In this document: one piece after another, positions 24,001 through 62,669 of the stretch | Numbering within the stretch: position 1 is the stretch's first letter | Layout of the letters: every line of letters starts with the position of its first letter | Source of the DNA: Fimbriosthenelais zetlandica | Taxonomy: Eukaryota | Length of the DNA stretch: 64,000 bases | Assembly (NCBI GenBank): GCA_977030845.1 | Contig: OZ365115.1 | Coordinates: 25,978,001 to 26,042,000 of the forward strand | Reading direction: 5' to 3' | Made by a program: the position numbers and the translations under genes | Notes under the pieces: generated by a model | Seen by the model: the letters and a program-made list of their open reading frames with translations, nothing else | Databases searched by the model: none | Told to the model about the DNA's origin: nothing

Positions 24001-27000
24001 TTTTTATACCTCAATATTACAAAGTGAATTGCAAAGTGTCAGTAAAAAACTTACATCGATCATTTCATCGTTGTGGTACCATTTTACTTGGGGTCGAGGG
24101 TCTGACAGCATACACTCTAATGTGATGTCCCTCTTCCTTGATGCTTTAGGCGTTGGTGGCAGTTTCTGCGTAAAGTAGTATCTGACTTTCTTTTCTGAAA
24201 AATCCAAATAGCAAGGATGACTGAAAGGTAAATACAGTTGAGATAATTCTAATAAATCACAAAATGATATGAAACATCATTTTTATCACTAAAGTAACAT
24301 GTAAACTCAACGCGTTTTCAGTAAATGAGTCTAAAGTCGCAAAAATGAGTTTTTGAGTTAGTTACAGATTCGCAGATCTGTCCAAATGGAAAAAATCGTG
24401 ATGGTACAACACACACAAAGATGATTTTTTTTCCAATTTCACAAAAATATTCAAAGCATACTTGCTTTTAATGCGACAATTCTAAAAGAAATAAATAACT
24501 TTTTTTTACAAAGCTTTCAGGCCTGTATGGCCCTGTGTGAATTTAGACTCATTTAGTAAAAAAACATCACAAATACTCACCTTCGACATGGACTTTTCCA
24601 TTAGTAGTTTTGTCCTCAGCTTGGCAAGAATAGCGACCAGCGTCCTCCATTCCAATATTTTGGATGGTCAAGGTAAAGACACCATCCTCCGTTTTGGAGA
24701 AATTATACTTCTTACCCTGGAAGATCTCGAGTTTGTTCTTCAGCCAGCGGACTTGTACGGAACATTTGGAGTACTTACAGGTCATTTTAACCGAGTCGTC
24801 CTTTTCCTTACAGTACGCATCTTGGAGAGGTTCCAACCACTGCTCTTGCGGCTATTTTGTAGGTATAAATGAGTAGCATTTTGTCATAATAAGGCGCAAA
24901 ATGTGCAGTAATTAATTAGAATAAATCTATAATAACCCATAAACAACTCAAAATGGGGTTTAAAACTTGTAAGCAAATTTGTGAGTATATGTATTTACAT
25001 TGATTTTTATCATTGTTTTTTCATAATCAAGAAAGTAGGATTATGTGTAAAATGGATATTTAAAAAAGAAAAATAAGAAGAACGAATATAGGTAGAAACA
25101 TCATATATAGCACAAAACATAGATCTATACAGAATGATCTAAGTACATGTATAAAGAGGCACTGTCTCCCTTATTTCCAATTAAGCGTAGAATATTGGCG
25201 GGATAAAATTGGGTTTATTCATATCAGAAAAAGGTTTTGTTTTGTTTTACAAGATCATATACCATGGCGAATATGATTTGTAACTTTAGCAAAAGAGAAC
25301 ATAGCGTATCTTCTTTAATGGGGGCACAAGTCCTTAAAGATTCATAATATAATTTTTTTCCTAAAGTAAGACATTTTTAAAGTCATATATTTACAAATGA
25401 AATTCATACGACAAATGCTAACAAAGAATTAAGATTAAATTATCGTAATAAGTGCTGAGAAAGAATTGAATATTTTACGGATAGGGTTTTGGAAGAGGGA
25501 TTCTTATTTCTTTCTGGTTGATACTTGAGAGGAATAATTAAACTTATGGGGATTTACGAGGAGACATTTGAATGAGACAAAGTTGAGGAGTCAAACACAG
25601 ACACTCCAAACATATAAGTAGTTACGCATGCCACCATTGGATACAACGACCAAGCTATCAAGTATTGAGAGCGCGCATTTGAAGTGAAAATATAGTTGGC
25701 TTAATTCTGGGCAGAGGATGGAAGGCATCCCCATTATAATAGCTCATCCATAAAAAGCTGGGATTAATATCAATTATATTTTGGAACGTATCTTGTGGTA
25801 CAACAATATCACCTTGTGTTGTTCAAAGCAATGAGATTTGAATTATACATTAATGTGCTCTGTTTTTTTAAATGAGAAGAAAACCTCATTTTAACATGAG
25901 TGGTAAATTATCAACAACTTATCAGCTACATGATTTTGGAAATATAGGATAATATAGAATATGGGAAATACAAAATGATTGACTTTCGTTATGTTTTGGC
26001 ACAGAATTTTGAAGTATTTGTGAACAATATTTGAATTTTGAAGTATCTTTGATCAATATTTCAAAAAATTTTGAACAATATTTCACAAGATACATTCCAG
26101 ACTTGGTGAGTTGCAAGTTATTCTTTGACAAAGTCAGGATAGAGAGAGAGAGACATGCAGCAGAACTTGTCACTATAGAAATCAGATGATACTCGGGGGA
26201 CCTGTAGAGAAGGAAGAATTTGATCATGAAAGAAAAAAAGTATGATAGAGAAAGAATACGAGGGTGTATAAGTATAATTATAGAAGTTCTTATCCATCCA
26301 CATCACCACTGGGCTGCATCAAAGTTCATAGAAACGGAGTAAAGCTTAATTAAAGGAAAGAATGCAAGAACTCCTGAAGAGTTAGGGAAGAAACACTGGC
26401 CAGACAGTGGACGTTTTTCAGCAACATCTTATGGCAGTACTTGTTTACAATTGGACATCATTTCAATTAAAATAATCAGTTCATGAAAAGCATATTATCA
26501 TGTCAGATGGATCTTCTAGATTCTGCAAAGTGGAAAAAAGTTGCATCAGTGAAATATAATCAGAGGAGGCAAAAAAGTTCAACAAAATTATAGTCAAAAT
26601 ATGAAAAAATGTATTATCTAGAGGACTATACAAAATGTACAAAATTTCAACTACTGGACGGTACAGAAACAGAGGACAGGATAAATGAAAGAGAGGACAG
26701 GACACGTAGATGGAAACATGGATGAAAAAATGGACAGATATTGGAATTAAGAGAGTGAGAGAGATACTTACCAAAAAAAGATTTCATGAAGAGTGCGACA
26801 GGACATAAAAAAGAACATTTGCAACATCAAACTTTAGGGAAAAGGCATTAGAATTGGATTATCTCATGTCAAAGACAGCCTCCTGAGCCTTTCATTTTTA
26901 TTCAAATTTAAAGATTTAGCCAAATATTTCAATGTGAGGGAGAATTCTCAATACCCATTTGGTTCAAGAAATGTCTGAAGAATGGATTTGAAGAATTTGA

Positions 27001-30000
27001 AGAATTCAAAGAATGAGCATTTGAAGGAGGAAGCTGCTTTGCATGATACCATGTACTACCATAAAGTTGCCTACACATTGTGGAGGTCCAGAAAAAATAT
27101 TTCACTTATCATATTTGAATTGAAAAACTGAAAACAATCAAAACCAAAGGGCGAGGTCCATTTGTTTGGCCAGTGTTATGAACAATGATATCACTTAAGT
27201 GGATATCAACTGTTCTGAGTTTTTGTTTTTGTTTCGTGCCTTTTCTGTCGAGAGCAGAACAAGGCACCTGACAACAAGAAGGGAAGATACATTATAAGGT
27301 GCACATAAATATTTGAGGAAAGCCATGACCATGCCAACAGATGTAGAGAGATATTACACATCAATAGCACAGCCACATATACCAATGGTGCAGCGAAGTG
27401 AAGCACTACTCACTACTTAGCCAGTCAAATGTCTAAAGAGAGAGGATGCAGGAAGAAGATCTAATTATAGTCATTCTACTGTCACCTTTCCAGCATTCTG
27501 GTGGTCTCAGTTTCAAGTCTATGATGGAGATGCAAACTCTAGTCTCCATTGCGCATGCGTGTAGCAACTTGGACCCGGAATAGCTTACAATCTAGTGTTT
27601 GTTAGAGTGTTTGGTTGTCCTGTTGCTATGATCTACACTCTATACTGTCAAGTAGTCTATCTACTAATATACCAAGTCTTGTATTCTATCAATCCAATCT
27701 CTTAATATATATGACAGTTGGACTGGGGGAAGAGGCAGGCAAGAGAGAAGAAAATAAATGTCAATGATGATTAGACAAAGGTGTATGAAGAGGGGTATAT
27801 CATTGTGCTCCCCAACCCACCATCCCAACTGCATTATTTCTTGTTATACCCCCTGTTGTACAAGGAACCTCGCCAATGGCCTTTACTTTGTCCAAGTACT
27901 GTTTTCTTGAAAAAATTGCTCGGTATTGCATTGTCCAAGCTCTGTTTTCTCAAAACTAGTGCATTTACAATACAATCGCTCGACGAGGGTACCCTCGCCA
28001 ACCCTCGCCATTAACGATTTTCTTGTACAACACAAGGATAGAAAGCCAAGCCTGTAAGTTCAGGATCTCCTTTGAAGCTTTTGAAAAACAAAGTGTATCA
28101 ACCCTATTTTTGAAAAGCTTCCAGTCTTAGTGTGTAGTAAGAAAAGAATCTTCGGCACAGATCATCTAGAGGGTGTGTATGTCATGTATGTACTACTAAG
28201 ATTCGGGGGAAAGAGAAATTATAGAGGAGTGGGTGGAAAAAGACCAAAAAATTCCCATCAGATCTTACAAGACTGGGTTGGGGATTGAATGCGTGTCCAC
28301 TGTGTCTGTCTTAGGATATACAAGGACCTTGGGGGGACCTTATAGTACAGGACTCTCTTGTGCTTTGGTGTAAACATGGGTGTACCTTTGGGGCAACTTT
28401 TCGTTTCCGTAGTTTAGGAAGGTCAGGGATTGCTTCCACCAAGGATCCTCTGCGAGGCTGTTGGGCCAGTAAGGAGTTACGTCGCTGTCTTTGAGTAACC
28501 TCTAGCTGTTCCACGTCGGCTTTACTATAGGTCTTTTGTGGCACCAGAACATCCTCTGAACCACGACGCTCTGGTGTCTGTTTTAAGGGGTAAGACAATG
28601 TTTCAACATGAGTGACGCAACAGTTGAGACGCAAAAGGTGGGGTTGACAGAAGCACATAAACAGTAACATCAACATGAAAAGTTTCACACTGAAGCTGGA
28701 TTGGCATTCAACTGCAGGGGGTTGTTTTGAGCAGTACCAAGGCAGGGAATACCAAAGTCAGTCCACAAAGGGTAGATGGGATCTATTTCTTCACAAAAGG
28801 TGGCATTTACTTTCGTTATGATAAACCCGTTAGATTTGTTAACACGTATCACTGCAATAGTTCTAGGTGTACACGTAAACCCGACCCTGTGAACTCCTCA
28901 AGTGATTTTTCACATGGATGAGGATGCAGTATTTGAAAACTCAAAATATTGAGCCAATCATTAATAGATTTTCTCTAACCCCCAGCACTTGAATTAAGGT
29001 CTGACACATTGGTAATTCGTGCTCTACAACACAGGGAAAAAAGAAATTTGGGATGCAATTTTTGATCGGAGCATTGAAGAACTTCAAGGGACTTGAGGTA
29101 CCATCATTTTGAGGGGCATAGGAGGACATTGGGGTTGAGTTCGATATTCCCTGTTCTTTTCATTTACGAACAATTCAACTGGAATCAAGACTAAAATTCA
29201 CTGCAAGGCCACACTGGTGTTAGGGGTCCAAGTGTGCAACATGTAAATAGTATACAAAAATGATTAGATTATACAATCTATTAAGTACATCAACGTTATA
29301 CTATCTTGCCACTGGACCATCACCCTTTTTCTATACTCAATACTAACGAATGTCTTTTTCACCTGATTGCTAGACACTTGAATATTCAAAATTCATTTTA
29401 TAATGCATGATGACAATACAAAGCCTAGCCATAATTATAGGCTCTCAAAAACTAGTCTTTAACAAAACATATTGAACAATATGAATGTAGAGCCATCTAT
29501 TATATATATACAATATCTAATATAAATTCTAAAGTTACTATCAAGATTCCTTAAGGAAATCCTCAACATTATGACATGACCTTTTTTGTTGCTAAGTACA
29601 GATAATTTTGATGCAGGAGAATTTTGTGATTTATATTTATGACAGTTTTCTGAACGACGTTTCTTTGACATTAAAATCCTTATCCATTCCAGCAACTTCA
29701 TTAATGGACAAAGCACAAAATTCTATTGCTCTGTCAAAATTAGCATTCTGCTACATTCATGTTGGTATATGAAAAGTCCATAATTTGTCGGCTACATTGT
29801 GTAAAAATAGGCCAAAATCTAATAGTGACAAATTTTCCTTCTAACCTACTTCATTCAATCTATTGATTTTGATTTCCATTACTGAATGTGACATAGCATC
29901 GACACTGGAAGAAGGAAATTTTAAGTTGATACACGAAGCTTCTAAACTAGCATTACTTTTCCATTCGTTGCATCCACGATACCTTTTCAAATGTTATTCT

Positions 30001-33000
30001 ACAAATGCAGAATTGAAACCTAGATCTAAGAAGTATCTACACTCAAACTAAAGGTCCTTACTCTTTGATTTTTACAAGGAATCTTGTAAAAATAGCCTTT
30101 GATTCTACTTCAGTTGACACAATTAGGGACATCTGGACTTTTAAAGAAACAAATGCCATTAAAGCAACAAAGGGTCGCAAAATACGAGAGAAAAATACCT
30201 GGGTATCAATGCTAGAACTCTGTCTTTTGTTGGGTCCAATATCGGCAGGGCTAGTCAAACCCGCTTGGATTTGCGCTGTAGCCCTTGTCTATTTTTAAAA
30301 TAAAACTCTCAGGTCCTGATGAGATAATGAAATATCCATAGTTATCCATCGCTGTCCTGGAGTCCTCTGCAATTTTCATTATCTGAACAGGACCTTTGGT
30401 TTAGGGACCAATTAAAATTTTGGTTGGATTTTCAATCAATTCATTGCATCTTTTCATTACATCAAATGGTCAGAAGGAGGTAATGATTGAATATAAAACG
30501 GACATCGTTCTAGCAGTTACTTAGGTCCAACTAAGAGCATTCAACATTCATTCAGCCATCTTAGATCTTCCGGAAGAAAAATTGAATTAACATCTAAAAG
30601 AAACGCGTTAATATTGACGCAAAAAGAGCACATCTGCATCCCAGTGCCTGTACATACAGATTGGTAGTGTTTTCTTCAAAAAATCATTTATGTGAACACA
30701 CACATATTATAATATGAGACTTACACAAGATTTTCATGATACTTTGAGAGGCTGAGTTTTTGGGATTGGGCACTGACCAGTTTTGATATTCGGATATCAC
30801 AGAGCCTACCAACAACAAAACAGATGTCATCATCTTCAGTGGTATAAACTAGATACAAAATGTTTCTGGAATACCAAAGTGAAAGTTATGCTTATATATT
30901 GACATTGCATTCATGTAAACATCATTCTCCTTTGCCTAACCTTTGTACAATTAAATCCCTAGCAAAATATATTGTTTGTATGCTGAGGAATCGCTTCACT
31001 TGACACCAAGACATACATTTTGATGCACCCACATGCAGAACCATCTAAGACACATTGATATAATTTCAGGGCTGTCAACTCTCAGGATTTTGGCCGGATA
31101 TTCTAGCTTTTTGGGGTCTAAAAATGCCTGTCTCAGGCCTCCGGCCTTTGGGCTACCAAAATCCACTTGTCTCAGGACTTTTTGAGACTCAAAAAAATTA
31201 AGCAACATGATTAGGTGACAATTCCATTGTTTCTGGTGAAATAAACTGACCAATCTAATTAAAATATATGTTTTTGTAATGGTTACACAAAAGAGGCACT
31301 GAAATAATAATCAGAAAGCCTTAAAATGGCACACAAGTGTTATAAGTTTCCAGGAGGCATGCCTCCTGAGCCAAAAAACAAAGCTCTGTGAGGGGCTCTG
31401 TGCCGCTGGCACTGGGTTTTAGGCCCGCGAAAATTCAGCTAGAAGATTCAAAACTTCATATTATGTTAAACAAGGAGGTAAATCTTTATAGCCTTGCAGT
31501 CAAGGGCTGGAACTACGTTTAACATTTCTTGAGGGGCAAAAATGCTTGGACAAAAAAATATATTGAAAATGTGACTTAGATCGTTCTGCCCATGGATGCT
31601 TCATTTGTGAAACATCCCAAAGGAATACCTAATGGTTAATCTTCAACGGAATGAATTGGGTGGAAATTATGTCTCGAATATTCCAGATATTGAATTTGTG
31701 AGTACACGGTTGAGAAACATGACATAACGAAGATTAGCGACAGAAAGGAGGCATCCAGATAGAATTATCCCTCGAGATGATAGCTTAACAATGACACTAG
31801 ATGAAAAGGGATGAAAAGGGGAAAGAACCAGTACATTTCCTTATTCATACACGTCCACCACTTGATTGAGTATCATATTTAATTGTTGCAAAAAAAGACT
31901 GAAAATGGAAAAGAAAGAAAAGAAAAAACAATAGGAAAAAAATTGTGGGTGGATTGAAAAAATTGTGGATTAATTGTATGGTTGACCCTACAACTTGGCA
32001 AATTGATGACAAAAATCTATTGTAATTAAAAATCTTCCACACAAAAAGGAAATGCTAATTTTGTTCCAAATGAGGTTTTCAGTGGTTACTTTCCAAATTA
32101 GATTTTTAGTATTTGGCTCAATAATTGTTATTTTCTTTCAAATCAAAAGTTGTAGCTAAAAACATTGATGGTTGTGTACATAAGGAAATGTCTTAACAGC
32201 AATTCTTTAGATTCAAAAGGAACAAGTTACTTTGTCCAAAAGCAATATTACTTGGAACATAATCCTTATATACCGATGGTCCCAGTGGCTTCTCCATTCT
32301 AGTCATATCACCATTTTGATATAAGAGATATATGTTTGCAAGTACGAAGGCACCTTTCAACTCTTGTGTTTCCATTAATTTTTCTGTATTTAATCAACGA
32401 AAAGGCTTATTCTGTTCATTCTTCAGTAAAGCTTTTTAGTTAAGTTTAGTCGTTAATTCCTTATTCTGTCAATAGAACATAGTCCTATTAAAAGTTTCTT
32501 GCACAAGGAACCTCGCCAATGACTAGGGTCGGCGAAGGCAACCTCGTCGAGCGTTTGCATTGTTCAAGTACTGTTTTCTCGAAAAAAGTGCCTGGACAAT
32601 TGCTTGTTATTGCATTGTCCAAGCACTTTCTTGTCTAGAATATTGCTTGTACAATACAAACGCTCGACGAGGGTACCCTCACCGACCCTCGCCATTGACG
32701 ATTTACTTGTAGCCTACAACACCCTGAATGTTAATTTGACTAATTTATTTTGATGAATTTTGGCAAAAGTTATTAAAACATTAAACTGGTTGTAAACTGA
32801 TAGTGTACAAGAGTTCAGAGGTGCCTTCAAAGCCTTTGGACATAGATGCTTGATTCCACTGGTCCGTGCGTGCATTAATCCAATCTGTGAAGAGTTTGCT
32901 TGACTCCAAATGTCCTTTAAAGACCATAAAGTTGTTAATCTGGCCTTAGAAAAGCAGTGTGTAAAGATCATTAACAGGAAAGGTACATTTTCAAACCTCT

Positions 33001-36000
33001 GACCTGAAGTTAGTCTTATTTCTTATAGTATTTTTTACAGTATGTTTTTTACATAAATATTTCTCCAAAATGAATACAAATTACATCCAAAAGGAGATCA
33101 GAGGAAAAAAAGATAATTTCTGAGATGTTCTTTTTATATAAAACTCATGAAATCTATTTTTTTCTAAATTGTAAAGGCATCAGGTCATTTTCACCTTGTA
33201 AGAGCCACATCGTCTTTTAACAGGTTCGAAAATTTTCAAATATTGAACAAATATTTTTTTACCAATGAATGTGGTTTTCTTCAATGTCAAATATTATTAT
33301 GGAATATGGCTCCTACGTGTGACTTAGGAATATTTAACATATTAGTCAGAAGCAGATGCTAATTGTTCTCATGCTATTAGTTAGGGTTCGAGCCCTAATT
33401 GGGTAAATTCCAAGTAAACCTACTCATTTTACTTTCTTCATTATTTTTTCTTTGTATTGATCTATAGATCTATTATTTCTGTTCACTATAACTTTCTATG
33501 GTTGGTTTTGCCACAGCTTAGTATATTAAGTGTCTTATCCAGTTCCCTGACCATAAAAGTTAGCAAATAAGTCCATTATTAACCAAGTGAAGTTAACAAC
33601 ACTTGGAAAGATTTCTTTGGGCAATTCTTAATGCAGCATTCCAAATATATTTTAGTGAATTCAATTGAACCAAATCTCATAAATAATTAAATTTTTTACA
33701 TTTTTACAAATTCAGCCCTACAGATTGGAGATTCTGTTGTTTTGAGACTGATAAAAGAAAGGAAAGGAAAAAAAAGAAAAGGAAAAAAATGAAAATTAAT
33801 AAAAATATAATTTAAATAATTTATAATTAATTATCTCAATGGCCAGGGGAGTGGATTTGAGGGATACACCTATAAAACAAATTAGGGTTTCTGCAGCAAA
33901 TATTTTCATGATTTGCAATGCCAATATAATGAGGAACAGTGCGGCCGGCACTTAAGATGTCCGGCCCAGTACCCCTTCCTTCCCACATCACCTTCTCCCG
34001 TGGCATCCTGAACTCGGGTTTTTCTGTGTATACGAGATCTGGCCAATCGGTCACTAGTTCCGCCAGTGATAATCGACGGAAAGTTTTATGGTTGGCAAGC
34101 TTGTGAACCCAAACCCACTCGAACTCCTCATCCTCATCAAACGTATCATCTTCTTCATCAAGAAAATCATCTTCTTCAAAAGTCTCACCAGTTACTGAGT
34201 CCAGATCATCCACATTGAATGGTCCCGGCTGTTTGGACGGTGCCCAGTGAAAGAAGGACATGCATTAAAATTCCACATCTTGAATTATGGTTTCATAAAA
34301 ATGACTCAGTTCGGGTTTGTTTCATTAATATTGAATTCTCTTAATAGTGCTTTGATCAGAAGGTTATATACAGAGAGATGAAACAAAAATCAAAGGGAAT
34401 AAAATTCTCTGTCAAAGTATTTGTTTTTTGTGTGTTTAATACTGGAATAATTGTGTGGCTGATTCTAGGCAATCACCCGGCCCAGAGCCCAAGTTCATGA
34501 GATCATAGAATTTAGAAAAAAAGTCAACTCAACACAGAGGGAAAATGGTAAAAAAAATTATGTAATCCTGAGTTAATATCCCTTGCTTTCATTTGTTTTA
34601 CTTCGTCTTAGTCTTACAGTCTTTACTTAGAAAAGAGATATGGGAGTACTAACTTCAAAATGTTCTTTCTCTCAAGATTATAGCCATATTCTGACATCCA
34701 TAATACAAGCTGTGGAATCAGTGCATGCTTTTAAGAACCTGGCATTCAAACTGAATTTCATTTTCAGAAGACGCTTGATAATTTCTTTGAACCCAGACCA
34801 CTGTTGCTACCATTATGCATTGAGAAATGACAATGTCAATACAGAGACAAAATCAACAGAATAATATAGTCAATATATGCCACTACCTCTATACGACATG
34901 GCTTCTGAACGGATGCAGATGTGCGAAGATTAGTTTGATATCTCTACCGACCTCACAAATACTAAATCTAACACTCGCTATAACCTATGGTTTAGTTGAA
35001 AAAAAAATCTTTTAAAATTGAGTACTAATAATGTTAAAACTATGATCAATCATTTAAAAATAGTATATAATATAATACATTTTTACAAACATTAGACAAT
35101 CTGATTTTGTGATTTTTTTTTTCAGCAATGTGTTGTTAAAAGAATAGGCCAATGATTTCATCAGATTGGAATTGTAAAAGAGATCAAAATTATATTAGTT
35201 CGAAAAATAAATCATTTCCAAATTTAAAGCTCTATACATGAACAAAATATTTTACCAATTTTCTTCCAAGAATAGCAGGAACATTGTTTATTTGGTGTTA
35301 AGTATGATCTATGTGCAAAATGCTTTCGACTCATGAATTCCCTAAAACTAGAATATTAATAAACAAAACGATCAACGACCTTGACATACATAATTGTCTA
35401 CCTAGCGTAATAATAACCATCGTGGAGCATGTCACCATACGGTAATGATCAAAATGACAAGGCTAATCACGAAAAAAATCCTTTCATTGACATAAATGAA
35501 TGGAAACAGGGAAAGAAAAGGATAAAGAATGAAGCACAAAACATGGTGCGGGGTAAGAATGGCATGTTTGCTGGGCAAAGTGACTACGATAGGTACCTGT
35601 GGAGGTTCGGACGATATGTTTATCATTGGTGCTAGGGATCCAGAGGCTCGGTCATAACCGTCATCTAAGCCTTCCGTGCCCCTATCTCCTCTAGAAGTGT
35701 CATGAGGATCCGATTCAAATTGCTGAAATTAAAGTTTCACACAACCCTTGTGTTTATACTTCTGGTCTCGATTCCGCTAGAACCCAGTCTCTGTCAGACC
35801 AAGTGTAGGCCTATAATCTCTCTCACAGTCTGGGACCTTTTCTCATGTTTTTTTTTAGAAAGAAATATTTGTCCAAGTCCGATGGGTTTGTCATGATTGT
35901 TCTACTTCGGGTTTTTAGGCTGAGAACAAACTGGGAGTGCACAGTACTACAGGCTATAGCTGGTTCAGATGGTTGGTTAACAACAGTTCAAAATCCATGC

Positions 36001-39000
36001 TCCTCGTAAAGGAGCATGATTTTCATGCTGGAAATTTGTAAACATTTGGATTGGTTTCATTGAAGTATGTACATGGACACACATAGTGGTAACGTTGCTA
36101 ATGGAATTACATATAATGGTAATGTACCGTACCATTATCAAGCACTCAGCGAGTGCTAACTATAGTATGGTCTAAGTGACAATGGTATTGGACATTGAGG
36201 AATTTGCAAAATGAATACTTTACAGGGGATTGACATTGAGAACGGACTAACTGTATCATCCGTTGTTGTGCAGATGAATAATGACTTAAAAGAAGGCAAA
36301 ATAAGCTCATGGAACAAAAGAGAAGGAAATAAATGAGAATTTTCCGTCTGCATCAACGATTGAAATGAAACAATGATACAAAGGACCCAAAACAGTGGTA
36401 GGAGAGAAAGAGAGAGTTGTGGATTCTTGACAATAATAATAAGCAATGATTGTACAGTCAAAGTCAGGAAAATTAAAAAATTCTGGTTGCCTGTGGGAAA
36501 AAGGAGTCATCAGTTGTCAATGCACAACAAAAAATTACGGAAAAATCGTGACAAAAAGTCTCCACTGCACCTGAAAGTTTCCAAATTCTGAAATTGGATT
36601 TTACAGTGCAGGGACAAGTATGGCTGGAGAGAGAATTTCAACTTTGCAAATAAAGCAATGACAATGAGTTTGCCAAAACAAAGTGAGTAAGAACGGTCCT
36701 CAAAAAACAGCAAAGCTGGGGTCGGGGAGTGAAATGGGATCAAAGTTCTTTAGTTCAAAAAATGAGAAACTCAGTCAAAAGGTGGGAAATTGAAACTATA
36801 AGAGAGTCAGTGCAGTGTAATACTGTAACAGCGTAAGTCACAAAATTGGTAGAGACAAAAAAAATAGACCGACGATTGTAGTAGATGTATACTAGAATAT
36901 AACCGTTTATTTCTGGTTTTAGAAGAAGTGGCAGTTATGAGGAGAAATTGGGGTTAGGGAGAGAAATTGTTTGAATGACTTCCCAAAGATCATCGGTTCT
37001 GAGTGATATCGTGAGACCTCATCCGTTGGTTATACAATTATGGAGGGATATAATTTGGAGATGAAGTGAGTGAGGCTTACCTTAGCTTTAGAAAGGTCGT
37101 ATCCAGACATTCTTCGTCGTCTGTCATGTTCCGGCTTCTCAATTTCCTCTGTTGAAGAGTAGCACAAACAGAAAATAAATCAGATTTGTGATATAAACTT
37201 TTCCTCTCTAACTGAAGTATAAAGTACAGTGTGTGGATCTTTTTTTTTCTTTTTTTTTTAATATTAGAAATTTATAGCAGTTTTTAAAGGAGTGCTCTGC
37301 CAGAGCTAAGGAACCTGTTGGTTAACACTTCGAGTTTCAGTGAATCATAAAGCGAAATTTAGATATTAAGACTTTCAAAGTTGAGATGGATACTCTATCC
37401 CAGCTAAAGCCGGGAGCACGCAAATCCGATTCTCTATCCGGTGCCATCGGATAGCTGTCAGAAACTGTATTTCTGTTCACACCAGAAATAGGGTATCGGA
37501 TGGTGACGGATTGGAGAATCGGATTAGTGTATTCCACGCTTAAGAGGGGCTTCTTTTGTTGAGAATCATGAAGAGAAATTTACATATTTCAAAGGGCGCT
37601 CTGCCACAGCTAAGGAAGTTTTTGACTTATTTCAGAATTTTGAAGAACATTGTATCCCAACTAAGGGAGAACCATGGATCTAGATGAAATATCTGAATGG
37701 TCGGACCGATAGTCGAAGTCAGATCCACCAAACTTTTTGGACTATTTGTAAGTATGGAAGGACAAACTCTGATCCGGCAAAGTACCAGAGTGTCTGTGGG
37801 TTGTGGTATACCTTAAGGCATACAGTCCAGATACTATTGCTAAGCTACCTTGCCCATCCTTATTTCAAGTATTTAGTTTAAAGTCGCGGACACTTTGTCC
37901 AATTTTATTTTAAATGTAACTGCTATCCAAGCTATGCATGTGCATTTCAGATTAGTTGTTTTATATTATAATGAGGTAATTAAATTAAAATAATATCTAC
38001 AATATAAGGTTGAAATATTATTATATTCAAGGAACTGCAAAAACTATTTATGTGGGGTAGGATTGGTAAGGTGAAAAACAAAATCAACCGAAGGGTAAAC
38101 TACATGCAGTCTACATCCTATGGAAAAGAACTGATGCAACTTAAAAGTGAAATGTGTTCCTAGGCTGAGAAAAGATTTTTCTCAATGCAAGGGAAATCAT
38201 CATATGTTCAAATGGACAGAGGAATTTACAATAACAGCATAGAGTAAGTTCTGTTCAACTAATCCCAGAATTCTAATATTTTATCATACAGTTCAAACTA
38301 GATAATTACAAGTCGGGTTCCTCCACTGAAAGTTCTGGCACAAATGTAAAGTTCTGCACCAGCAGGGGATTGCTATTTGCGAGGAGTGCCAATAGTATGG
38401 TCTATTTGCGAGTTGTGTGGCAGATATGGCAATTGAGGCCATAGAAAAGTCAGCCACAAGGGCTAGCCGCAATAAAATCGCAACAAAACCCACAAGACAA
38501 AAGAACTGCAGTGGAACTACTCCATTAACAAAATTCTATGAGGCATGGGAGTATTTTATATGAGGTATGGGGAAATTGTTCATTGAAGCACAGATTTATG
38601 TACTGCATGTCTCAATATACAATTCAGTTTCAGCTCTAGTTTTTTTTACAGTCAGAATGGTATACAATGTCATACGTCTCTGTAAGAGTACAGGTCGTTT
38701 ACGGCGAGCTGGCTTTCTGAGTGCCCACGGCTTCAATTCTACAGTTTCGGTCACAAAAGATAGAGCCAAAGAAAAGAAGAAAACATGATAACCACTGACA
38801 AATTGAAATCTAAGAAACTATAAGGGGAAAGAAACTATAGACATATTGTGGAACGATTGATAAAAAAAACATTCAGTGCCTTTTTCAGGTTTGATATTGA
38901 GGAAGAAATGACAAAACCAAGCTGTTTCATTTTAGACGAACAACATCCTTGCAACATAGATTAACCCACAAAATGACGTTTCTCCTTTTCATTATTTTGC

Positions 39001-42000
39001 CACGTTTTACTCTGTACATTACTAAAAGCTGTTTGTAAAGAGTTTATGAGGAAACCTTCCTGCTCATAACTAAGGTAATGTTTCGAACAGATGGAATAAA
39101 GGTCAAATATGGCTGTGCCAAGCAGAGGAATGTGAGCCGAGGCCAAAGCATTGATACGACTTCCAATTGTGCATTGCTGTACTTGCTACTCACACTAGGG
39201 CATTCATAATAAAAGTTGTTTCTCATTATCAAAGTAAACAAAGAAAATAATAATAAGTTTTAAAAAACCCTCAATGAGATGCAATAGGGGCCAAATTAGT
39301 TTGATTTTCTGAAGAGCCAGGGCTGCCAACTCTCCGGATTTTGGCCGGAGACTCCGGCTTTTTGGGTCCAAAAATGCCTGTCACAGGCCTCCGGCCTTTG
39401 GGCAGCCAAAATCCATTTTTGTCAGGCTTTTTTAAGACTCAAAACATTTAGGCCTAAGAAACCCCTGTTAGTTGACATTTCCATTGCTTCTGGTGAAATA
39501 AACTGTCCAATTTAAAGTAAAATATTATGTTGATGTAATGGTTAGGCCTACACAAAAGAGGCACTGATTTCACCAGAAAGCCTTAAAATGGAACAACATT
39601 TGTTTTAAATTTCCAAGAGGCATTGCTTGTGTAAATTCGTCATTGAAAAAGAAACATCATCTTTGTCGCAGAGGTGTCACAAGCAAAATCGCAGCAGTAG
39701 AGACCAGGATATAACAATGGCACATTGGATTGAGAAATAATGCATGTGGAATGATAATAATAGGGATGATCAGGAAGTGGTCAAGTTCTGTGCTAAACAA
39801 AGTTGACTTTTCAGGTTTGAGTCAAATTTTCAGGTTTTTTTGTTTTTACTTTATCAAAATCAAGAGATTTCTACAATACTAGTATGGTCCAAACAAACTG
39901 ATAAAAATGTTTTTGAACATTTCCAGATCTGGTACCCAAGCGAATAATCATAAACAAAGTAGAAAATGAAGCAAGGAAAACGGAAATTAAAAAGTGACAC
40001 AGGGTAAGTATGAGCTAGTATACACTAGGTTCTTACCAAAATCAAACTCTGTAATGAAATATTAGTGGATGTAGGGCACAAATTAATCAACTATCAATGA
40101 TCTTCCATTCTTAGTTTTTATTAGAAACTTGAATGGAATTCATTTAAATAATTAGAAATAATAATCAAATAACCAATATAAAATGGGAAATTATGTTTGG
40201 TGAGTTGTTAGTTTCTGCTTCGGTGTCTTCATTGGGGAGTAAATCATTTATCTTTGCTTTGTTTTTTTACTCTTTGTCTGCCGATTGTGCCGCCCTGCTA
40301 TGCATTCAGCACAGTCATTGCTTTTATTTTAATAAAATTTATTTTTAATTTTAATTAAAAGGCCTTTAGTTATACAAGTAGGCCCTACTTGTTCTTTTAT
40401 AGTCTTTCATAGGACAAAATGCAATTTTAGATTTTTATAATTTGCCCAATTAACAACAATTAATTACTTCAGTATTCAACTTATGTTCTCTTCTAATCTA
40501 AATCCAATTATAAAATGAACACTTACGAGGTTTAAGGTTGAGATCTTGTTGATCATCTGTTCCCTTCTTCTTCTTAATATCCTTGTGCTTGAGCAAATTT
40601 CTGAAGTCAACATTGGTGGAATCAGGATCTGAAATGCATTGATATAAGTCATATTAACATGGCTCTCAAATCAATCATGAGCTTCCATTCTTAGTTTTTA
40701 TTATAAACTTGAATTCAAGTGTCAATCGACATGGGTGATGCTTGTGTCGCAATAAAATTTATACATTGTGGTCCAAGTGTCCAAGTATCCTCCAGTGGCA
40801 CATTTTTCATTGGGACAAAAACATCACCTTTGTCACAGAAGTGTCGCAAGTAAAATCGCAGCAGTGGAGTACAGGGTTTAGAATAGATTTTCAGAAGAAA
40901 GAAGAAATAAAAGATCTGGAAGAATATGGCCAAACCAAGTCGATGGGACAGTTTGAATCTCTTAGATATGTAGGTTTCAGTACTGAAAAGTCATATTTAT
41001 AATAATGTGATTTCTTTCTTTCGCTGGTTTGTAAGGGACATTGATCCGAACCCAACTCAAATTCGAACCCCCATCTTTTCAAATCACAGGAACAGCCCCT
41101 GAACAAAGTAACCAAGCTTTCCACGTACCTTTGACAAACACTGAGAAGCCTACAAAGTCTAGAGATTTGTTATCCTTGTCGAGAAGCTCCAGTTTGTAGG
41201 AGGCCTCGTCCCGATCTTTACATTTCTTGAGCTCCAGGAAGCAACGCATCTGAGACTTATCGAAGATCATGGTCGTCTTAGGATTCTTCATGAGCTCACG
41301 ACCAGAAGCATGCCACTTGACGCTCACTGGGTTTTGTAACAAGAAGACCTCAACTGTCAACGTCCCACCTGCAAAAATAACACAAAGTGCTGTTCTAAAT
41401 ATTGTAAGAACTTGGACTCAGAATTATTGAAATCTTTACATGAGGCATGCTCTTTGAGTTGTACGTATATGACTTTTATTTACACAATTTCCATGTTTCT
41501 CCATGGATTTTCAGGTAATTAATCATAATCACATTTGTACATAATTATAATTATAAAATGTACAATAATACTTCAACATAAAAACATGTCCCTTCGAACC
41601 AATTTTAACAATTTATGACTTTGCAATAACATATCAATAACATAACTTTGCTTCGTTCACTGTTAAAGTTAAAATGATTGAAGGTCAGTTCAAGATCATT
41701 CAATGTTAAAAATGGTCATTTCAACATATATTCTCACTTGGTCGATTAGGAGCTATATCTTCATCCACTATACCTATAAATATTGATCGAAGTTAATCGA
41801 TATTTTACTTTCTAATTTGGTCGATTAGGGGCCTCGAACCTGGGACTTTCGACAAATATGGGGTAGACACTAACCACTACACCACCACGGTGGTCCAAAA
41901 CGATTCCTAGCAGTTCATAAACATAGACTTCCCCGAGTTTTCCCTGATTTTCCCCTGAGTAAGCCCTTAAATTCCAGGAGATATTTTAGCCATATGAAGC

Positions 42001-45000
42001 ACTGTGAACTTCAGTGGCGGGCATAGGATTGTATGCCTCAACATCCGAGGGATTATCGTTCTGAGTCAGTGTTGAAATTCCCTGAGTTTTCCATTTTTGT
42101 TCACAAGTTCCCTGAGTGGAAAGAGACATACCTTCATTGACGACCTGGTTCTGCGGTTTAGTTTTGAAGTATTTAGATGGTTCATCATCCTCATCGGGCC
42201 TGACACTGCCTCTCCTGGGTCCTGCTCCCGGTGGCTAGATTAAAAACAAAGGTTTATTAATTTATAATTCGATATTTATTTCCTCATCTTCAATGCATCA
42301 CTTTCATTACATTACTTATCCGCACATTGCGACCTCACTGAGCTACCACAATCTTCTTGTTCTATAACGGGGAAAAAAACGTAGGAATAATGCTCCTATG
42401 GTAGTGTGGAAACCCCCCTGTTGTACAAGGGTCGGCGAGTGCAACCTCGTCGAGCGTCTGCTTTGTTCAAGTATTGTTTTCTCAAAAACATTGCTAATAT
42501 ACAATACAATCGCTCCACGAGGGTACACTCGTCGACCCTCGCCATTGATGATTTACTTGTACAACACCCTGTAGGACTCCTGCAAGGGAAAGCCGACTCT
42601 CGCTTGCAAAAGATCTTGTCGCAGCGCTGGAGCCAACGAGAGGTTTCCACAGCTGCTCCAGGGCTTGCGCTGGAGTTTTCACCAATATTTGAAATCATTT
42701 GCAAAGTATATCCAGTAATACTAACCTTTGGTTCCAGTGTATCTGCAATATAAATTGAGACAAAATCAGAAACAAGATCCCATAGCAATATCAAATACAC
42801 AAGAGGAGTCCTTTTAACATTGGGCATAAGAGAAACAAATCGTAAATCTCTTCTGGATATCTCAATATAAAAAGGGAAACTTCGAATTATACAGAAATGA
42901 CAATCAAATATGCAACAATCAGAAATAGAATATCAATACCTTCTTAAAATATAAAATAAAGTGTGTATTCTAATGAAATTTTCTAGCCTAGTTTTTATAT
43001 GTACTGAATGCAAAAGAAAGAAAATATACATGTATCTATGAAATAAAATGAGTAATCTAAGATGCAAGAACAAACAGTACATATATTTATACCTATTGAA
43101 AACAGTATCTGTACATCATAATAATTTTCATGTGGGATAATTTTCATGTGGGATGAATTGGGAAGGGATAGATAGTGGATGGAATACGACAGACTAACAT
43201 GACAATTGAAGGAAAGAAAAGTTCTAAACTTTCCAGAAATACTCCCTAGACTCCGCACACATATTTATGCAAATTTATACAAAGAGTATATATGCAAATA
43301 GGCTACACCGCCAATAATTAGATACTCATAAATTTAAAAACAGATGAACCAATGAATGAGATATATGACGTAATTTTTTCTACGTCCAATTTAGTTATAG
43401 TAGAATTAAGTCTACTTCAAAGATTAAAATACATTTATAAATATTTATATTCATACCTTATCTTTAACGCCTCACCTTTATACATTACTTAAGAGTTTAA
43501 CTTGACCTGGTTTCCAAATTCTTTTGGCCATCTCTTTTTATACATGCAATCCTTTCTTTGAGTCGTTTATAACACCACCTAGATAATTGGTAGTTCCAGC
43601 TAAGTAACCAAGGGGCCTATTCATATCCGAATGATTCCAATTTATCGATTCTAAATTTATTTATTTATATTAAAAATCTGAATAACTTTCCCTCTGTAAT
43701 AAAATACCCCAACATCCAAATGCTGTGTTGCATTTTTTCCTACAAGAATACACAAACTCGGTTTAGGCCAATTTAAGTCTTTTTTCAAAAATGTTTGCCT
43801 TAACATTGATCAATTTACTATATAAACTATTATATTAATTATTTACAGCTAATTTTTATAATGTCCATGCCTGTACTAGATATTGTATAATGATCAAGGA
43901 CAAAAGTTGACAGAACAGACATAGGATTACAAGACATCAATAGACAAGACCTGAATAGTTATGTAGTCCTACACTATTATGGTACCACCTACAAAATAGA
44001 TTCAATTGTACACTACAGAAGCCTGGCATTGCATTCAAAATAAATTTGCATAAAAATCTGCAAATAAAGACTTATAATGCACTTGTCTAAGAAGATTGTG
44101 ACGATTTAAATGTAGGGTATTGTTTCCGCAGTTTTTTTTTCTGATTTTTCTTCTAGATTTTTTGTATATGGTTCTCCCCACTCACCTCTGGCTAAGTCAG
44201 GGACCCGATCGTCTTCTTCGTTCTCTTCTGCCATTGGTCAAGTCAAAAGTGCGATTAGCCAATCAGAATGTCATTCAGTTGGGATAGACTACAGCCCTCT
44301 ATTGGTTGGAGTGGATGACAATGTACACTTTCAGATTTCTCTCTACAGGTGGGGTGAAAATTATCAAGGTATCGAATATCTTTCCACCGAAAGATATACC
44401 AATAGCTCGGAGGACCGCAAAACGTAGTTATGTAAGAAATTGGTGAAGAACACTCAGAAATTTGGTGCGTAAATCCATGTTATGAAGACCTCCCAATAAT
44501 ATGAAAACACTGAGTTAATTGTGACAGTGACGTAATGTTTTGACAGTGCCAAACATTCTATGCTAACATAGTGAGGGGATTCAACACTGGGATAGATTTA
44601 CTTTTGATTGTTTTAAGTTATTCTAGGACATATTATTATAATATGTAATAATCAGACTGGGCTCTAAGACATGGGGTCTTGTATTGAATGACATTCGTCT
44701 GGCTTTTTGTCAGTCGGTTAGTAATTGCACGACAGTCAAGTCATATTCATCAGAGTTGTCGAGTCAATCTTTAGAATTTCTTTTAATTATTTTTCAACAC
44801 TGTCTAAATTTAAGAGCTAATTTTTAAATTTGTTTCATTTAAATTTGGTGTGGTTAGATAGGCCCTATTGATGTATAATTTGTATGAATGGATGTGTTGA
44901 AAAATGTATTTTGTGACATTGTAGTTAATTTTGATGTTGAAAGAAATGATTTGATTTGTTTATTGTGATCTTTTCAGTCTAATCTATAAGTCTAAAATAT

Positions 45001-48000
45001 TCATTGTCTTTTATGTATCAGACATTGAAAGTTCTTTCAACCACAGAGTGTACTACATGACTGTGTTTCTTCTTCAAACCGGATGAGAAAAAGTGAGAAA
45101 TTGTACCAAACCTTTTACATAGTTGAAATAAAATGACACCACCTAGCATACAACCTACTGTCTGACGCGCTCTACTCTATCATCCTACCTTCTAAAGGGA
45201 CATTCTGATGCAGCATATCTCCAAACATGCGAGATAAGCATGCTGTCTTTGACCTTGGCATGTGTTGAAATAGGATGAAGTTATAGAATAACAACTTCAC
45301 CGAAATGTAAATTATGTTGCTTGAGTTCAAAATGATTCAGTGATATTGGTATAGTTTGACCAAATCCAAATGATTATTGTTGTTTTGAACTTCATTCTTC
45401 ACTGTATCTGAATCAAGATGACACAGTGCATAGAAGAACGCTGATTTGAAAAGCAGCCCACCCCCAATAGAATGCGCATGTATTAATTAAATAATATACA
45501 AATTTGAATTGATATGGAACGGATATAATCAGAATCTATACTGACCACCTGTTGTACAAGGAACCTCGTCAATGGCGAGATTCGGCGAGGGCAACCCGTC
45601 GAGCGTTTGCTTTGTTCAAGTACTATTTTCTTAACAAAAGTGCTTGGGCAATAGCTTGTTATTGCATTGTCCAAGCACTGTTTTCTCAAAAAACATTGCC
45701 TGTACAATACAATCGCTCCACGAGGGTACCTTCGCCGACCCTCGCCATTTTCTTGTATGTAGGGCCTACAACACCCTGATGAAGAGCCCATTGAAAAATT
45801 TGATTTGATTTGATGTAAGAACCGCTGGCATATCACAACGATAGAGGAATTTGGAAAAATGAGATTTGACAGATTTAGAACCAGAAAAAACCACATGAAC
45901 CAAGGTCAAAGGTTGGATGTCACCTTTACCTTCTTCTTCCTCTATGGGAACTTCCTGTTGGTTTTTGAGTGTTGTTGATAACCGGGGGTAGCGTTTTCGA
46001 GCTAATTCACGCAAAGCTTCATCGTCAAGAGTTTCGTCATCGGACCCATTTTCATCAGAACCTCCACTCCCCCTACGCCCAGAATTACCAAGGCCATTTT
46101 CCTTGAGCAGTTCTGGGGTACTTTCTTTGGATTTACATTCAGTCTTTGGTAGGGAGTTGGACAGGGAGGGTTGTGTTGATTTGCGTTGTTGTTTTTCGGA
46201 GCCGTTTGTAAGAGGCGAGTTCTGCGGGGTCGAGTTGGCCTTGGCTGACAATGCAAAGAAAACAAGACAAGCAAACAGGAGCATTAGAGGGTGAAGTGAA
46301 GTGAAGAAGTGAGGGGTGGTGGAGAGAGAAAGAAGAGATTAGGAGAAGTGGGGAGGGTGAGTGAGATGGCCAGTGAGTCAGCCAGCGTGGTGGTCATACC
46401 AATGGGTTGTGTTAGGATGCCTTTGGTTCCTTACCTCAAAATCTGCCTGATTGACCAAATAATAGGCAGTATAGAGAAATTATTATGAGTGTTCGATTCA
46501 AAGATGACATTTCAAATAGCGGTAAGTACCACAACTTCGTTTTTGCCAATTGTTTGAGTTAGGAATGAGACCTATACCCCAAATGGTGCAATATTTCCCA
46601 TATTATGTTCCCCATTGTATTTGTTGATAGTTTTGGTTCAGAACGAATATTGAACAGACATTTTTGAATATTAACACTCATAATTATTGGGGGCAGGAAA
46701 AATCAGTATGGAAGAGTACTGTTAAAGTTGCATAACAGGAATACCTGGAAAAGGTAGAAAGAGAAATGGTAGGATATAAGTTAATTGGAAGACAGGAGAT
46801 GAGTTGAAGAGGGTGCACTGCAAATGACCTAGTGCCTAACTGTGGCATGAGAGAAAAAAACCGGTATTAATATTGGATGTGGATGGGCAAAAACATACAA
46901 AATCAGCACAAAATTCTTAAAATATACAATGCTGCAAAAAGCATGTCTCTCGGTACCATACCTTGAAAATCCTTGTACTAAGCTCCAATAGGTACACTGT
47001 TACACCCCGTCAAAATTTTACAAAGATCACCAAAATACATAAAAAGACAGATAAAAATCTGTAGAAAAACAGAGATTAGGATGGAAGGGAAAGGGTGAGA
47101 CACATAAGGGTGGTGGGGATTGAAAAGAGAGTTGTCTTGTCCAGAATGAGTACGTATGTGGAATGTCAAATGTTTTGGATAGTGTACATATACATCATAT
47201 TCTGGTACACACATAATATACAATTGTATTTCCTCTGCCTAACATTATGCATACGGATTTGCCAAATACTTGCAAAACATTAGGATCTTCTTCCATATTT
47301 TTCCTGAAATAAAGTGTTGTTATAAGATGAAAGGCTGCAAGAGACAGCTTGAAATGAAGGGTGATTAGTAATAATGTTACTAAAAATACTCCTCTACATT
47401 TCTATTAGTTATTAGAACAAAAAATGGGTCATGACAAATAATAATTGTGGAGCAAATACTTATTTGTTATGTTATTGCTAGGCTTACATACTAAAAGGCA
47501 TTGGATTCTTCCATCAATGGGAATCAACATCAAGCAGGTGGCATTTGTTCCACAGTGTTTGTGAAAAGCAACAGATATGAGCTCCAAGTGCTGCAATTGA
47601 CATCAGATTTTCAGCAAACTATCTGTCAATAACTACAGCTTGTCCACCAACAGACTGGTTGGAGAGATCCGTTGGAGATCCTGTATTGACAGACAAAATG
47701 TCTGACGGCACAGGAAAGTTTTTCGCAAACACTGTTTCATTAAGGTATTTTGTCTTAACATTTGTTACAGGCATATCCATGTGTGAATGGTTTTTGGGAT
47801 TTTATAGGCATTATCCTTTCAAAAGTAGGATTGATCAACACATCGGAGAAAGTCAGATGGTGAGGAAAAGAACAACTGGTTGGGAAGGCAGGATATTCAG
47901 GAACAATCTTTGTAACTGAGTGCATGGTATTTAATGGGCAAATGTGTCGCTTTCGTGGTCATTATGTATGTTCAAAGATCAAGTTTGGTATACATAAGGG

Positions 48001-62160: not shown

Positions 62161-62669
62161 ATAATTTCGCAGCAATATCTTGTTGCCACTGACTGTCTTT
62201 TGTGAATCTTGCATGGTTGCTGCGAATGTCTAGCTACACTGTCACAAGAAGGCAGGCCCCTCCTTTTGCAGAATTTAAGACAATTTCAATGAGGAACTGC
62301 AAGAATCAAAATGAAAAAAAAATCCTTAATGAGTAAGCCCAGTACAGCCAATGGATCCAGTCTTTTCATATCTCTTAAAATGTATTAAATTGTAGTTGAA
62401 CAATATAGATTATATATAGGATGGGGGAAAATCTATAATACTCTTTGCAATCATGATTTCAGATTTTAAATGACTATATTGAAGCATTTTGAATAAATAA
62501 TGTCTGATAATGAAAAGACACACAGTATTCTTTATGGGCAGGTGATCCAAAATGACCCTTGCCAAGGCAACCTTTCTACGGGCCAGGTAAGGAAAGCAAG
62601 AGTATAGCTCCCAACTTATATATAGGACATTCACAAGCACAGCTGTACTTCCCCTCTCAGCTCTGAGAT

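Follow-up and report, generated by a model that had tools for sequence, protein, structure and literature searches.

A 64,000-nucleotide stretch of contig OZ365115.1 (positions 25,978,001 to 26,042,000 of the forward strand; hereafter the window) was analyzed for a series of exons encoding RRxS motifs, candidate targets of protein kinase A (PKA), in a linker of a twitchin gene. Judged by homology, the window contains about the first half of a twitchin (UNC-22 family) orthologue on the minus strand. Approximately 20 tblastn segments were each collinear with the twitchin-like proteins of Gigantopelta (residues 642-2458), Littorina, and Dreissena. Pfam I-set and fn3 domains were found on the window exons, and an N-terminal run of Ig domains followed by Fn3-Fn3-Ig super-repeats was collinear with known twitchins. 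Further downstream on this contig and strand, at 17-25 kb from the window, kinase exons (C25:25953228-25961761) show 63-74% identity to the corresponding region of Mytilus twitchin. They appear to supply the single MLCK-like kinase domain of the same gene, making one-gene continuity a candidate. A preliminary description, made from the letters of the window, had called the gene a twitchin, and the collinearity, the domains, and the downstream kinase exons bear this out.

We compared the gene with twitchins of gastropods (Littorina, Haliotis, Gigantopelta, Biomphalaria, Physella, Lymnaea, and Babylonia), bivalves (Argopecten, Mizuhopecten, oysters, Mytilus, Mya, and Dreissena), Octopus, the nemertean Tubulanus, and the rotifers Brachionus and Seison. 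A homologue search with the exon encoding the eighth Ig domain (Ig8) was dominated by titin and obscurin giants and yielded only two useful proteins (P0064 and P0089), and most matches of a first search, made with the Seison region, were to obscurin and titin. Summed over all matched exons, identity was 42-46% (~44%) to bivalves, gastropods, Octopus, and Tubulanus alike. Because the gene is as close to the nemertean as to molluscs, its sequence places the host as a spiralian outside the sampled mollusc groups, and bivalve catch is an analogy here rather than a given. The host is probably an annelid. The bivalve and catch frame of the preliminary description did not hold, as the uniform ~44% does not single out the bivalve host that catch regulation would presuppose.

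The exons of the linker between Ig7 and Ig8, followed by two exons upstream of it, are as follows.

42132..42234, minus strand: Ig7 start exon, with RRGS (42216-42205) and the first Ig7 strand; aligns with the Ig7 start of Littorina.
41129..41368, minus strand: main Ig7 exon; weak Pfam I-set match below the curated cut-off, with tblastn matches to orthologue Ig7.
40527..40628, minus strand: DFRNLLKH exon after Ig7; splice sites and frame read, aligning with the conserved DPKDS.LDFR.LLKHR block of all orthologues.
37081..37148, minus strand: site-1 exon, 68 nt, phase 1 to 0, with RRMS (37116-37105); aligns with RR(L/P/M)SQIE of mollusc, nemertean, and rotifer twitchins.
35597..35722, minus strand: candidate optional exon, 126 nt, phase 0-0, without RRxS; frame and splice sites kept in a related species.
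33992..34228, minus strand: extra exon, 237 nt, 79 residues, phase 0-0; an acidic stretch, FEWVWVHKL, then a D1-like module with RRLS (34078-34067).
28386..28577, minus strand: D1 exon, 192 nt, phase 0-0; site 2 RRGS (28568-28557), site 3 RRNS (28484-28473), and D1 from 28454.
24581..24851, minus strand: Ig8 exon, next after the D1 exon; Pfam I-set E 1.9e-12, 87% identical in the related species.
45930..46244, minus strand: pre-Ig7 linker exon, ending in phase 1, with RRGS (46077-46066).
50124..50280, minus strand: PEVK-like exon opening with DWPDL; low-complexity matches to orthologue PEVK-like regions.

The linker is read in the order 42234-42132, 41368-41129, 40628-40527, 37148-37081, (35722-35597), (34228-33992), 28577-28386, and 24851-24581. 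Joined from 42234 to 24581, these exons are in phase, and the frame remains open with or without the two shown in parentheses. As the preliminary description had reported, seven RRxS motifs lie on minus-strand exons (at 28568, 28484, 28454, 34078, 37116, 42216, and 46077). Its six exons translate on that strand as it wrote them, each with an AG acceptor and a GT donor, and exons 28577-28386 and 34228-33992 are both phase 0-0. Whole frames of the window, each of 21,000 codons, held only 2-9 RRxS motifs. Shuffling residues within the five exons concerned gave a mean of 0.19 motifs against the seven observed, a number reached in 0 of 20,000 shuffles; the enrichment is therefore real.

Four of the seven motifs are the ordinary site set of the twitchin Ig7-Ig8 linker: site 1 on exon 37148-37081, and sites 2, 3, and D1 on exon 28577-28386. 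In nearly all twitchins compared, the linker comprises a DFRxxL block, site 1 (RR.SQIE), site 2 (RRQS), site 3 (RR.SMQ), and D1 (RR.SL.E.IPDWP.L), followed by Ig8; Babylonia, Tubulanus, and Seison have three linker sites rather than four. The window has the DFRxxL block, the sites, and the D1 core, with one deviation, DLP for DWP. Its product translated without 35722-35597 and 34228-33992 aligned column for column with ten orthologues. When it was set against mollusc twitchin linkers, a check that the preliminary description had proposed, the D1 exon and site 1 aligned with all four known sites. The seven-site bank of that description is thus present in full, and it is for the most part not new, being the four-site Ig7-Ig8 linker conserved across Spiralia.

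The D1 exon aligned over ~58 residues to the stretch preceding Ig8 in Gigantopelta, Littorina, Dreissena, Brachionus, and Seison, and a D1 profile built from 19 distinct mollusc and rotifer modules, with no window sequence among them, matched it at E 1.8e-8. Conservation was also measured against a related species with a Logan assembly (hereafter the relative), represented by contigs L001 and L002 from the same run. On L001, 57 of 64 residues of the D1 exon were kept between identical splice sites (ratio of nonsynonymous to synonymous divergence, omega or dN/dS, 0.10; synonymous divergence, dS, 0.75), and the exon's motif persisted through twelve synonymous changes. Nine nucleotide changes in the site-1 exon 37148-37081 amounted to a single amino-acid change. 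The serine and both arginines of D1 were invariant in 19/19 distinct modules and in both species here. On these alignments, exon 28577-28386 is orthologous to the mollusc D1 exon. Because the D1 core and the RRxS linker are present in Seison (P0089), Brachionus (P0194), and Tubulanus (P0237), the multi-site linker with a D1 core before Ig8 is, as judged from the proteins compared, pan-spiralian and not a mollusc or catch-muscle invention.

In Mytilus twitchin, D1 lies between Ig7 and Ig8, and its phosphorylation by PKA weakens actin binding, according to passages of PMC12040844. The preliminary description had given the Mytilus D1 as RRPSLVDVIPDWP, which is right for predicted Mytilus twitchins; the Mytilus D1 reads RRPSLVDVIPDWPTL. 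The Mytilus D1 linker (Ser-1075) and the one in the window share the Ig7-Ig8 position, the DFRxxL block, four RRxS motifs, and the core RRxSL..(I/V)PD.P.L. They differ in that the gene here is ~44% identical and non-bivalve, in that its D1 has DLP where Mytilus has DWP, and in that it carries a second D1-like exon, found in none of the fetched Mytilus isoforms.

This second module lies on the extra exon, 34228-33992. A search with the open frame around it returned one protein, P0223, from the relative. The relative's 6-kb contig L002 is collinear with window positions 37152-32174, and L001 holds the D1 and Ig8 exons. Between the two species, 63 of 80 residues of the extra exon were kept (dN/dS 0.095, dS 1.40), with a single 3-nt indel and with the AG and GT retained; the Ig8 exon, compared over 24851-24582, gave dN/dS 0.045 and dS 1.51. 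In the relative, the open frame breaks just outside both borders of the extra exon, closing three codons past the donor. RRLSLA was kept despite changes in five of its six codons, and the exon is single-copy in its own genome. Run on all six-frame open reading frames of the window, the D1 profile gave exactly two matches, the D1 exon (E 1.8e-8) and the extra exon (E 8e-5), and the next stood at E 3.7, so that the two D1-like cassettes of the preliminary description were recovered by an independent profile. A D1 module was found in 87 of 342 fetched proteins, each of which carries exactly one. The acidic half of the extra exon had no counterpart in the mollusc, nemertean, and rotifer twitchins compared and no Pfam match. 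A metagenome match (L007) was discarded as a 63% GC bacterial contig with a chance EWVWVHKL, no twitchin exon, and no D1 module.

Given its pattern of conservation, exon 34228-33992 is a real coding exon under selection that encodes a second D1-like module. We are highly confident of the exons, their orthology, and the second module as described. The novelty lies in this exon, which is under selection and gives a non-mollusc twitchin a second D1-like module; only that module is new.

A further interval between the site-1 and extra exons, 35722-35597, has a frame that is open in both species, with no internal indel; the neighboring intron has 11- and 5-nt indels. Its acceptor (tttcag) and donor (CAG/gtacct) are conserved, its omega is 0.36, and it translates as QFESDPHD...SEPPQ. 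It is probably a further optional linker exon, with weaker support than the other exons have. Other blocks shared with the relative (36813-36667, 36599-36469, 33006-32807, 32366-32174, 27628-27358, 26850-26761, 26238-26165, and 25786-25586) were rejected as exons because every frame contains stops in at least one of the two species. An inverted pair, 32828-32807 and 32367-32346 (minus strand), of 22 nt and 91% complementarity, lies in the intron that separates the extra exon from the D1 exon. Its arms lie at the inner ends of two conserved non-coding blocks, and the relative retains both arms along with their pairing; comparison with the relative revealed no compensatory changes in the pair. 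It may be a splicing-related stem or the ends of an old transposon.

In molluscs, the D1 region is variably spliced. In annotated isoforms of Mytilus, Mya, and Octopus, site 1 is followed directly by Ig8, which leaves one site of four. One Haliotis isoform has the D1 exon replaced by another exon, and in further Octopus forms a short acidic exon takes its place. Additional inserts carrying RRxS separate site 1 from the D1 exon in Mya (WAR03836), Biomphalaria, and Physella (the last two with an RRES insert), and scallops have a long alternative region there. Since mollusc isoforms skip or replace the D1 exon, splicing that alters the number of PKA sites is already known. The preliminary description had mentioned tissue-specific splice forms of this region in Mytilus, and this agrees with the annotated isoforms that lack the D1 exon and with Kusaka 2008, which a passage of PMC6059360 on Mytilus cites for a D1-containing isoform specific to catch muscle. 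The mollusc optional exons (Mya WAR03836, the RRES inserts, and the scallop region) resemble exon 34228-33992 in lying between site 1 and the D1 exon and in altering the number of RRxS motifs. They differ from it in carrying plain RRxS without a D1 core, and they have no clear sequence likeness to it. The Argopecten isoforms X9 (P0232) and X10/X11 (P0227/P0228) part directly after the D1 module, reading RESLAQVVEEN... and REEPDKF..., respectively.

Several features of the window are typical of exons used optionally. The borders of the D1 exon match those of the piece missing from the Mytilus, Mya, and Octopus isoforms. The three exons that separate site 1 from Ig8 (35722-35597, 34228-33992, and 28577-28386) are each phase 0-0, and because the D1 and extra exons are symmetric, omission of either keeps the frame; the D1 exon, at 192 nt, can thus be skipped without a frame break. 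Identity to the relative in the 50 nt of intron upstream was 85% for the D1 exon and 71% for the extra exon, compared with 63% for Ig8, 48% for exon 37148, and 46+-3% for random pairs. The symmetric exons have conserved non-consensus donors (gtacac, gtgatg, and gtacct) versus gtaagc and gtgagt at their neighbors. The extra exon also has 13 consecutive identical codons in a GA-rich stretch, despite a dS of 1.4 overall. Because these hallmarks come from one species pair and five exons, they are only suggestive of optional exon use. Optional use of one or more of the three symmetric exons seems somewhat better than an even bet, and it is unlikely that the two D1-like modules are truly interchangeable.

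Taken as a whole, the locus is best explained as a conserved four-site linker with optional symmetric exons that add a second D1-like module, a reading to which we assign a probability of about 0.6. Under it, exons 40628-40527, 37148-37081, and 28577-28386 would be joined to give the four-site RRxS linker of mollusc, nemertean, and rotifer twitchins, and 35722-35597 and 34228-33992 would be inserted where molluscs have optional exons particular to individual lineages, between site 1 and the D1 exon. By analogy with Mytilus, the unphosphorylated D1 region would tie thick to thin filaments, PKA phosphorylation of the RRxS serines would release this tether, and a second tether gated by phosphorylation, together with an acidic spacer, would come from the extra exon. 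If, as we infer, at least one symmetric exon is optional, muscles could therefore differ in their numbers of sites and tethers. The most specific form of this proposal, a non-mollusc (probably annelid) twitchin with two separately encoded PKA-gated D1 tethers that are chosen or combined by exon selection across muscles, is doubtful, and we offer it only tentatively.

Several points count against optional inclusion and PKA-gated tethering. The search with the frame of the extra exon found no spliced protein fragment, and purifying selection on this exon equals that on constitutive exons, which would fit constant inclusion as well. The hallmarks were compared with one relative only, over five exons. 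At two sites the +1 residue is poor for PKA (RRGS-E and RRMS-G). Finally, bivalve catch muscle is the only tissue in which the tether mechanism is known, and the host is not a bivalve.

The strongest alternative is that all linker exons are constitutive, giving one twitchin with five RRxS motifs and two D1-like modules in the Ig7-Ig8 linker, and no dial of site number. The extra exon (omega 0.095) and the D1 exon are equally constrained, and the frame is open with all exons included. Constant inclusion is nevertheless hard to square with the optional use of the orthologous D1 exon in four mollusc lineages, with an insertion point that is a hot spot of optional exons in molluscs, or with the conserved upstream intron, conserved non-consensus donors, and stretch without synonymous change that typify regulated exons. 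We regard it as possible, and clearly the less likely of the two.

A different doubt concerns the kinase. The RRxS serines could be targets of protein kinase G (PKG), calmodulin-dependent (CaM) kinase, or the twitchin kinase itself, or their conservation could reflect a role in binding instead of phosphorylation. The RRxS motif is recognized by kinases other than PKA as well, and the two poor +1 residues fit this idea. It is made rather unlikely by the invariance of the D1 serine and both arginines in the 19 distinct modules and both species, and by the orthologous Mytilus D1 site, which PKA phosphorylates according to a passage of PMC12040844.

Were the two D1-like exons mutually exclusive, with one or the other joined to Ig8, the product would have a D1 linker with three sites or an acidic linker with only one. 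In favor of this, the two exons share phase 0-0 and a terminal D1 module, the intron separating them contains a conserved inverted pair, and the end of the extra exon joined to Ig8 (MPREK) resembles by eye the bivalve D1-to-Ig8 junction (EMPEKW in Dreissena). Against this, the exons differ in length and, unlike typical tandem duplicates, show no resemblance beyond the module. The frame survives inclusion of both, so exclusivity is not enforced, and the inverted pair lacks compensatory change and may be a transposon remnant. We consider this arrangement improbable, slightly more so than the action of another kinase. That exon 34228-33992 is an open frame by chance, or part of some other element within the intron, as the missing Pfam match and the acidic half without a counterpart in mollusc, nemertean, and rotifer twitchins might suggest, can practically be dismissed given an omega of 0.095, a sole indel of 3 nt, retained splice sites at which the conservation of the frame stops, single-copy status in the genome, and the match to the D1 profile.

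The twitchin D1 site is the molecular switch of bivalve catch. As rotifers, a nemertean, molluscs, and the present host all retain the four-site linker, the switch is far older than catch muscle, and one lineage has added a second, selected copy of it on an exon of its own. If the extra exon is optional, as the preferred reading of a four-site linker with added symmetric exons has it, it would offer a natural experiment on how passive tension and sensitivity to cyclic AMP (cAMP) depend on the number of D1 tethers. If the two-tether proposal were true, catch-like, cAMP-released holding of tension would predate molluscs and be tunable in worms. No new kind of system is implied, as multi-site linkers and skipping of the D1 exon are already annotated in molluscs.

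Comparable designs exist in vertebrates. The M-domain of cardiac myosin-binding protein C is a disordered inter-Ig linker with several PKA sites, whose phosphorylation loosens myosin and actin binding. Like twitchin, it is a thick-filament protein with a multi-PKA-site linker between two Ig domains; it differs in belonging to another family with no known sequence relation and in having a site number that is not known to be set by exon choice. In the N2B/PEVK spring of titin, cassette exons set linker length, and PKA/PKG phosphorylation tunes the mechanics. Titin shares with the gene here the giant Ig/Fn3 build, a cassette-exon linker, and PKA/PKG tuning, but its phosphorylation alters spring stiffness, whereas that of twitchin D1 would release a thin-filament tether.

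The two remaining RRxS motifs, at 46077 and 42216, had been counted as linker members in the preliminary description. They fall outside the Ig7-Ig8 linker, and their exons are not directly joinable. With a phase-1 end on exon 46244-45930 and a phase-0 start on exon 42234-42132, the two cannot join directly; the gap must be bridged by a further exon whose length is 2 mod 3. A search between 45930 and 42234 for a phase 1-to-0 exon gave only weak candidates, such as 42361-42339 (23 nt). The C-terminal end of exon 46244-45930 resembles by eye the K.Y.K.PTTILEE segment of orthologues, and no counterpart of its RRGS at 46077 was found in those compared. The RRGS at 42216-42205 is matched by RRxS motifs (RRMS, RRAS) ~12-14 residues before the GP.F strand of Ig7 in Haliotis, Gigantopelta, and Octopus, and this motif just before Ig7 may be a fifth ancestral site.

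DWPDL opens exon 50280-50124, in agreement with the preliminary description, which had noted the motif as recurring there. It gave no score with the D1 profile, and no RRxS-ending exon lies upstream, so it was rejected as a third D1 module. An E/K-rich block with EEEKKKKA repeats (56437-56970, minus strand) lies on the same exon as Ig6, and Octopus twitchin has a similar E/K run before Ig7. A dispersed repeat, detected in minus-strand translations, has at least seven intronic copies, near 62230, 58330, 45830, 42900, 32710, 28060, and 23900. The copy at 32513-32701 forms a hairpin with 88-nt arms.

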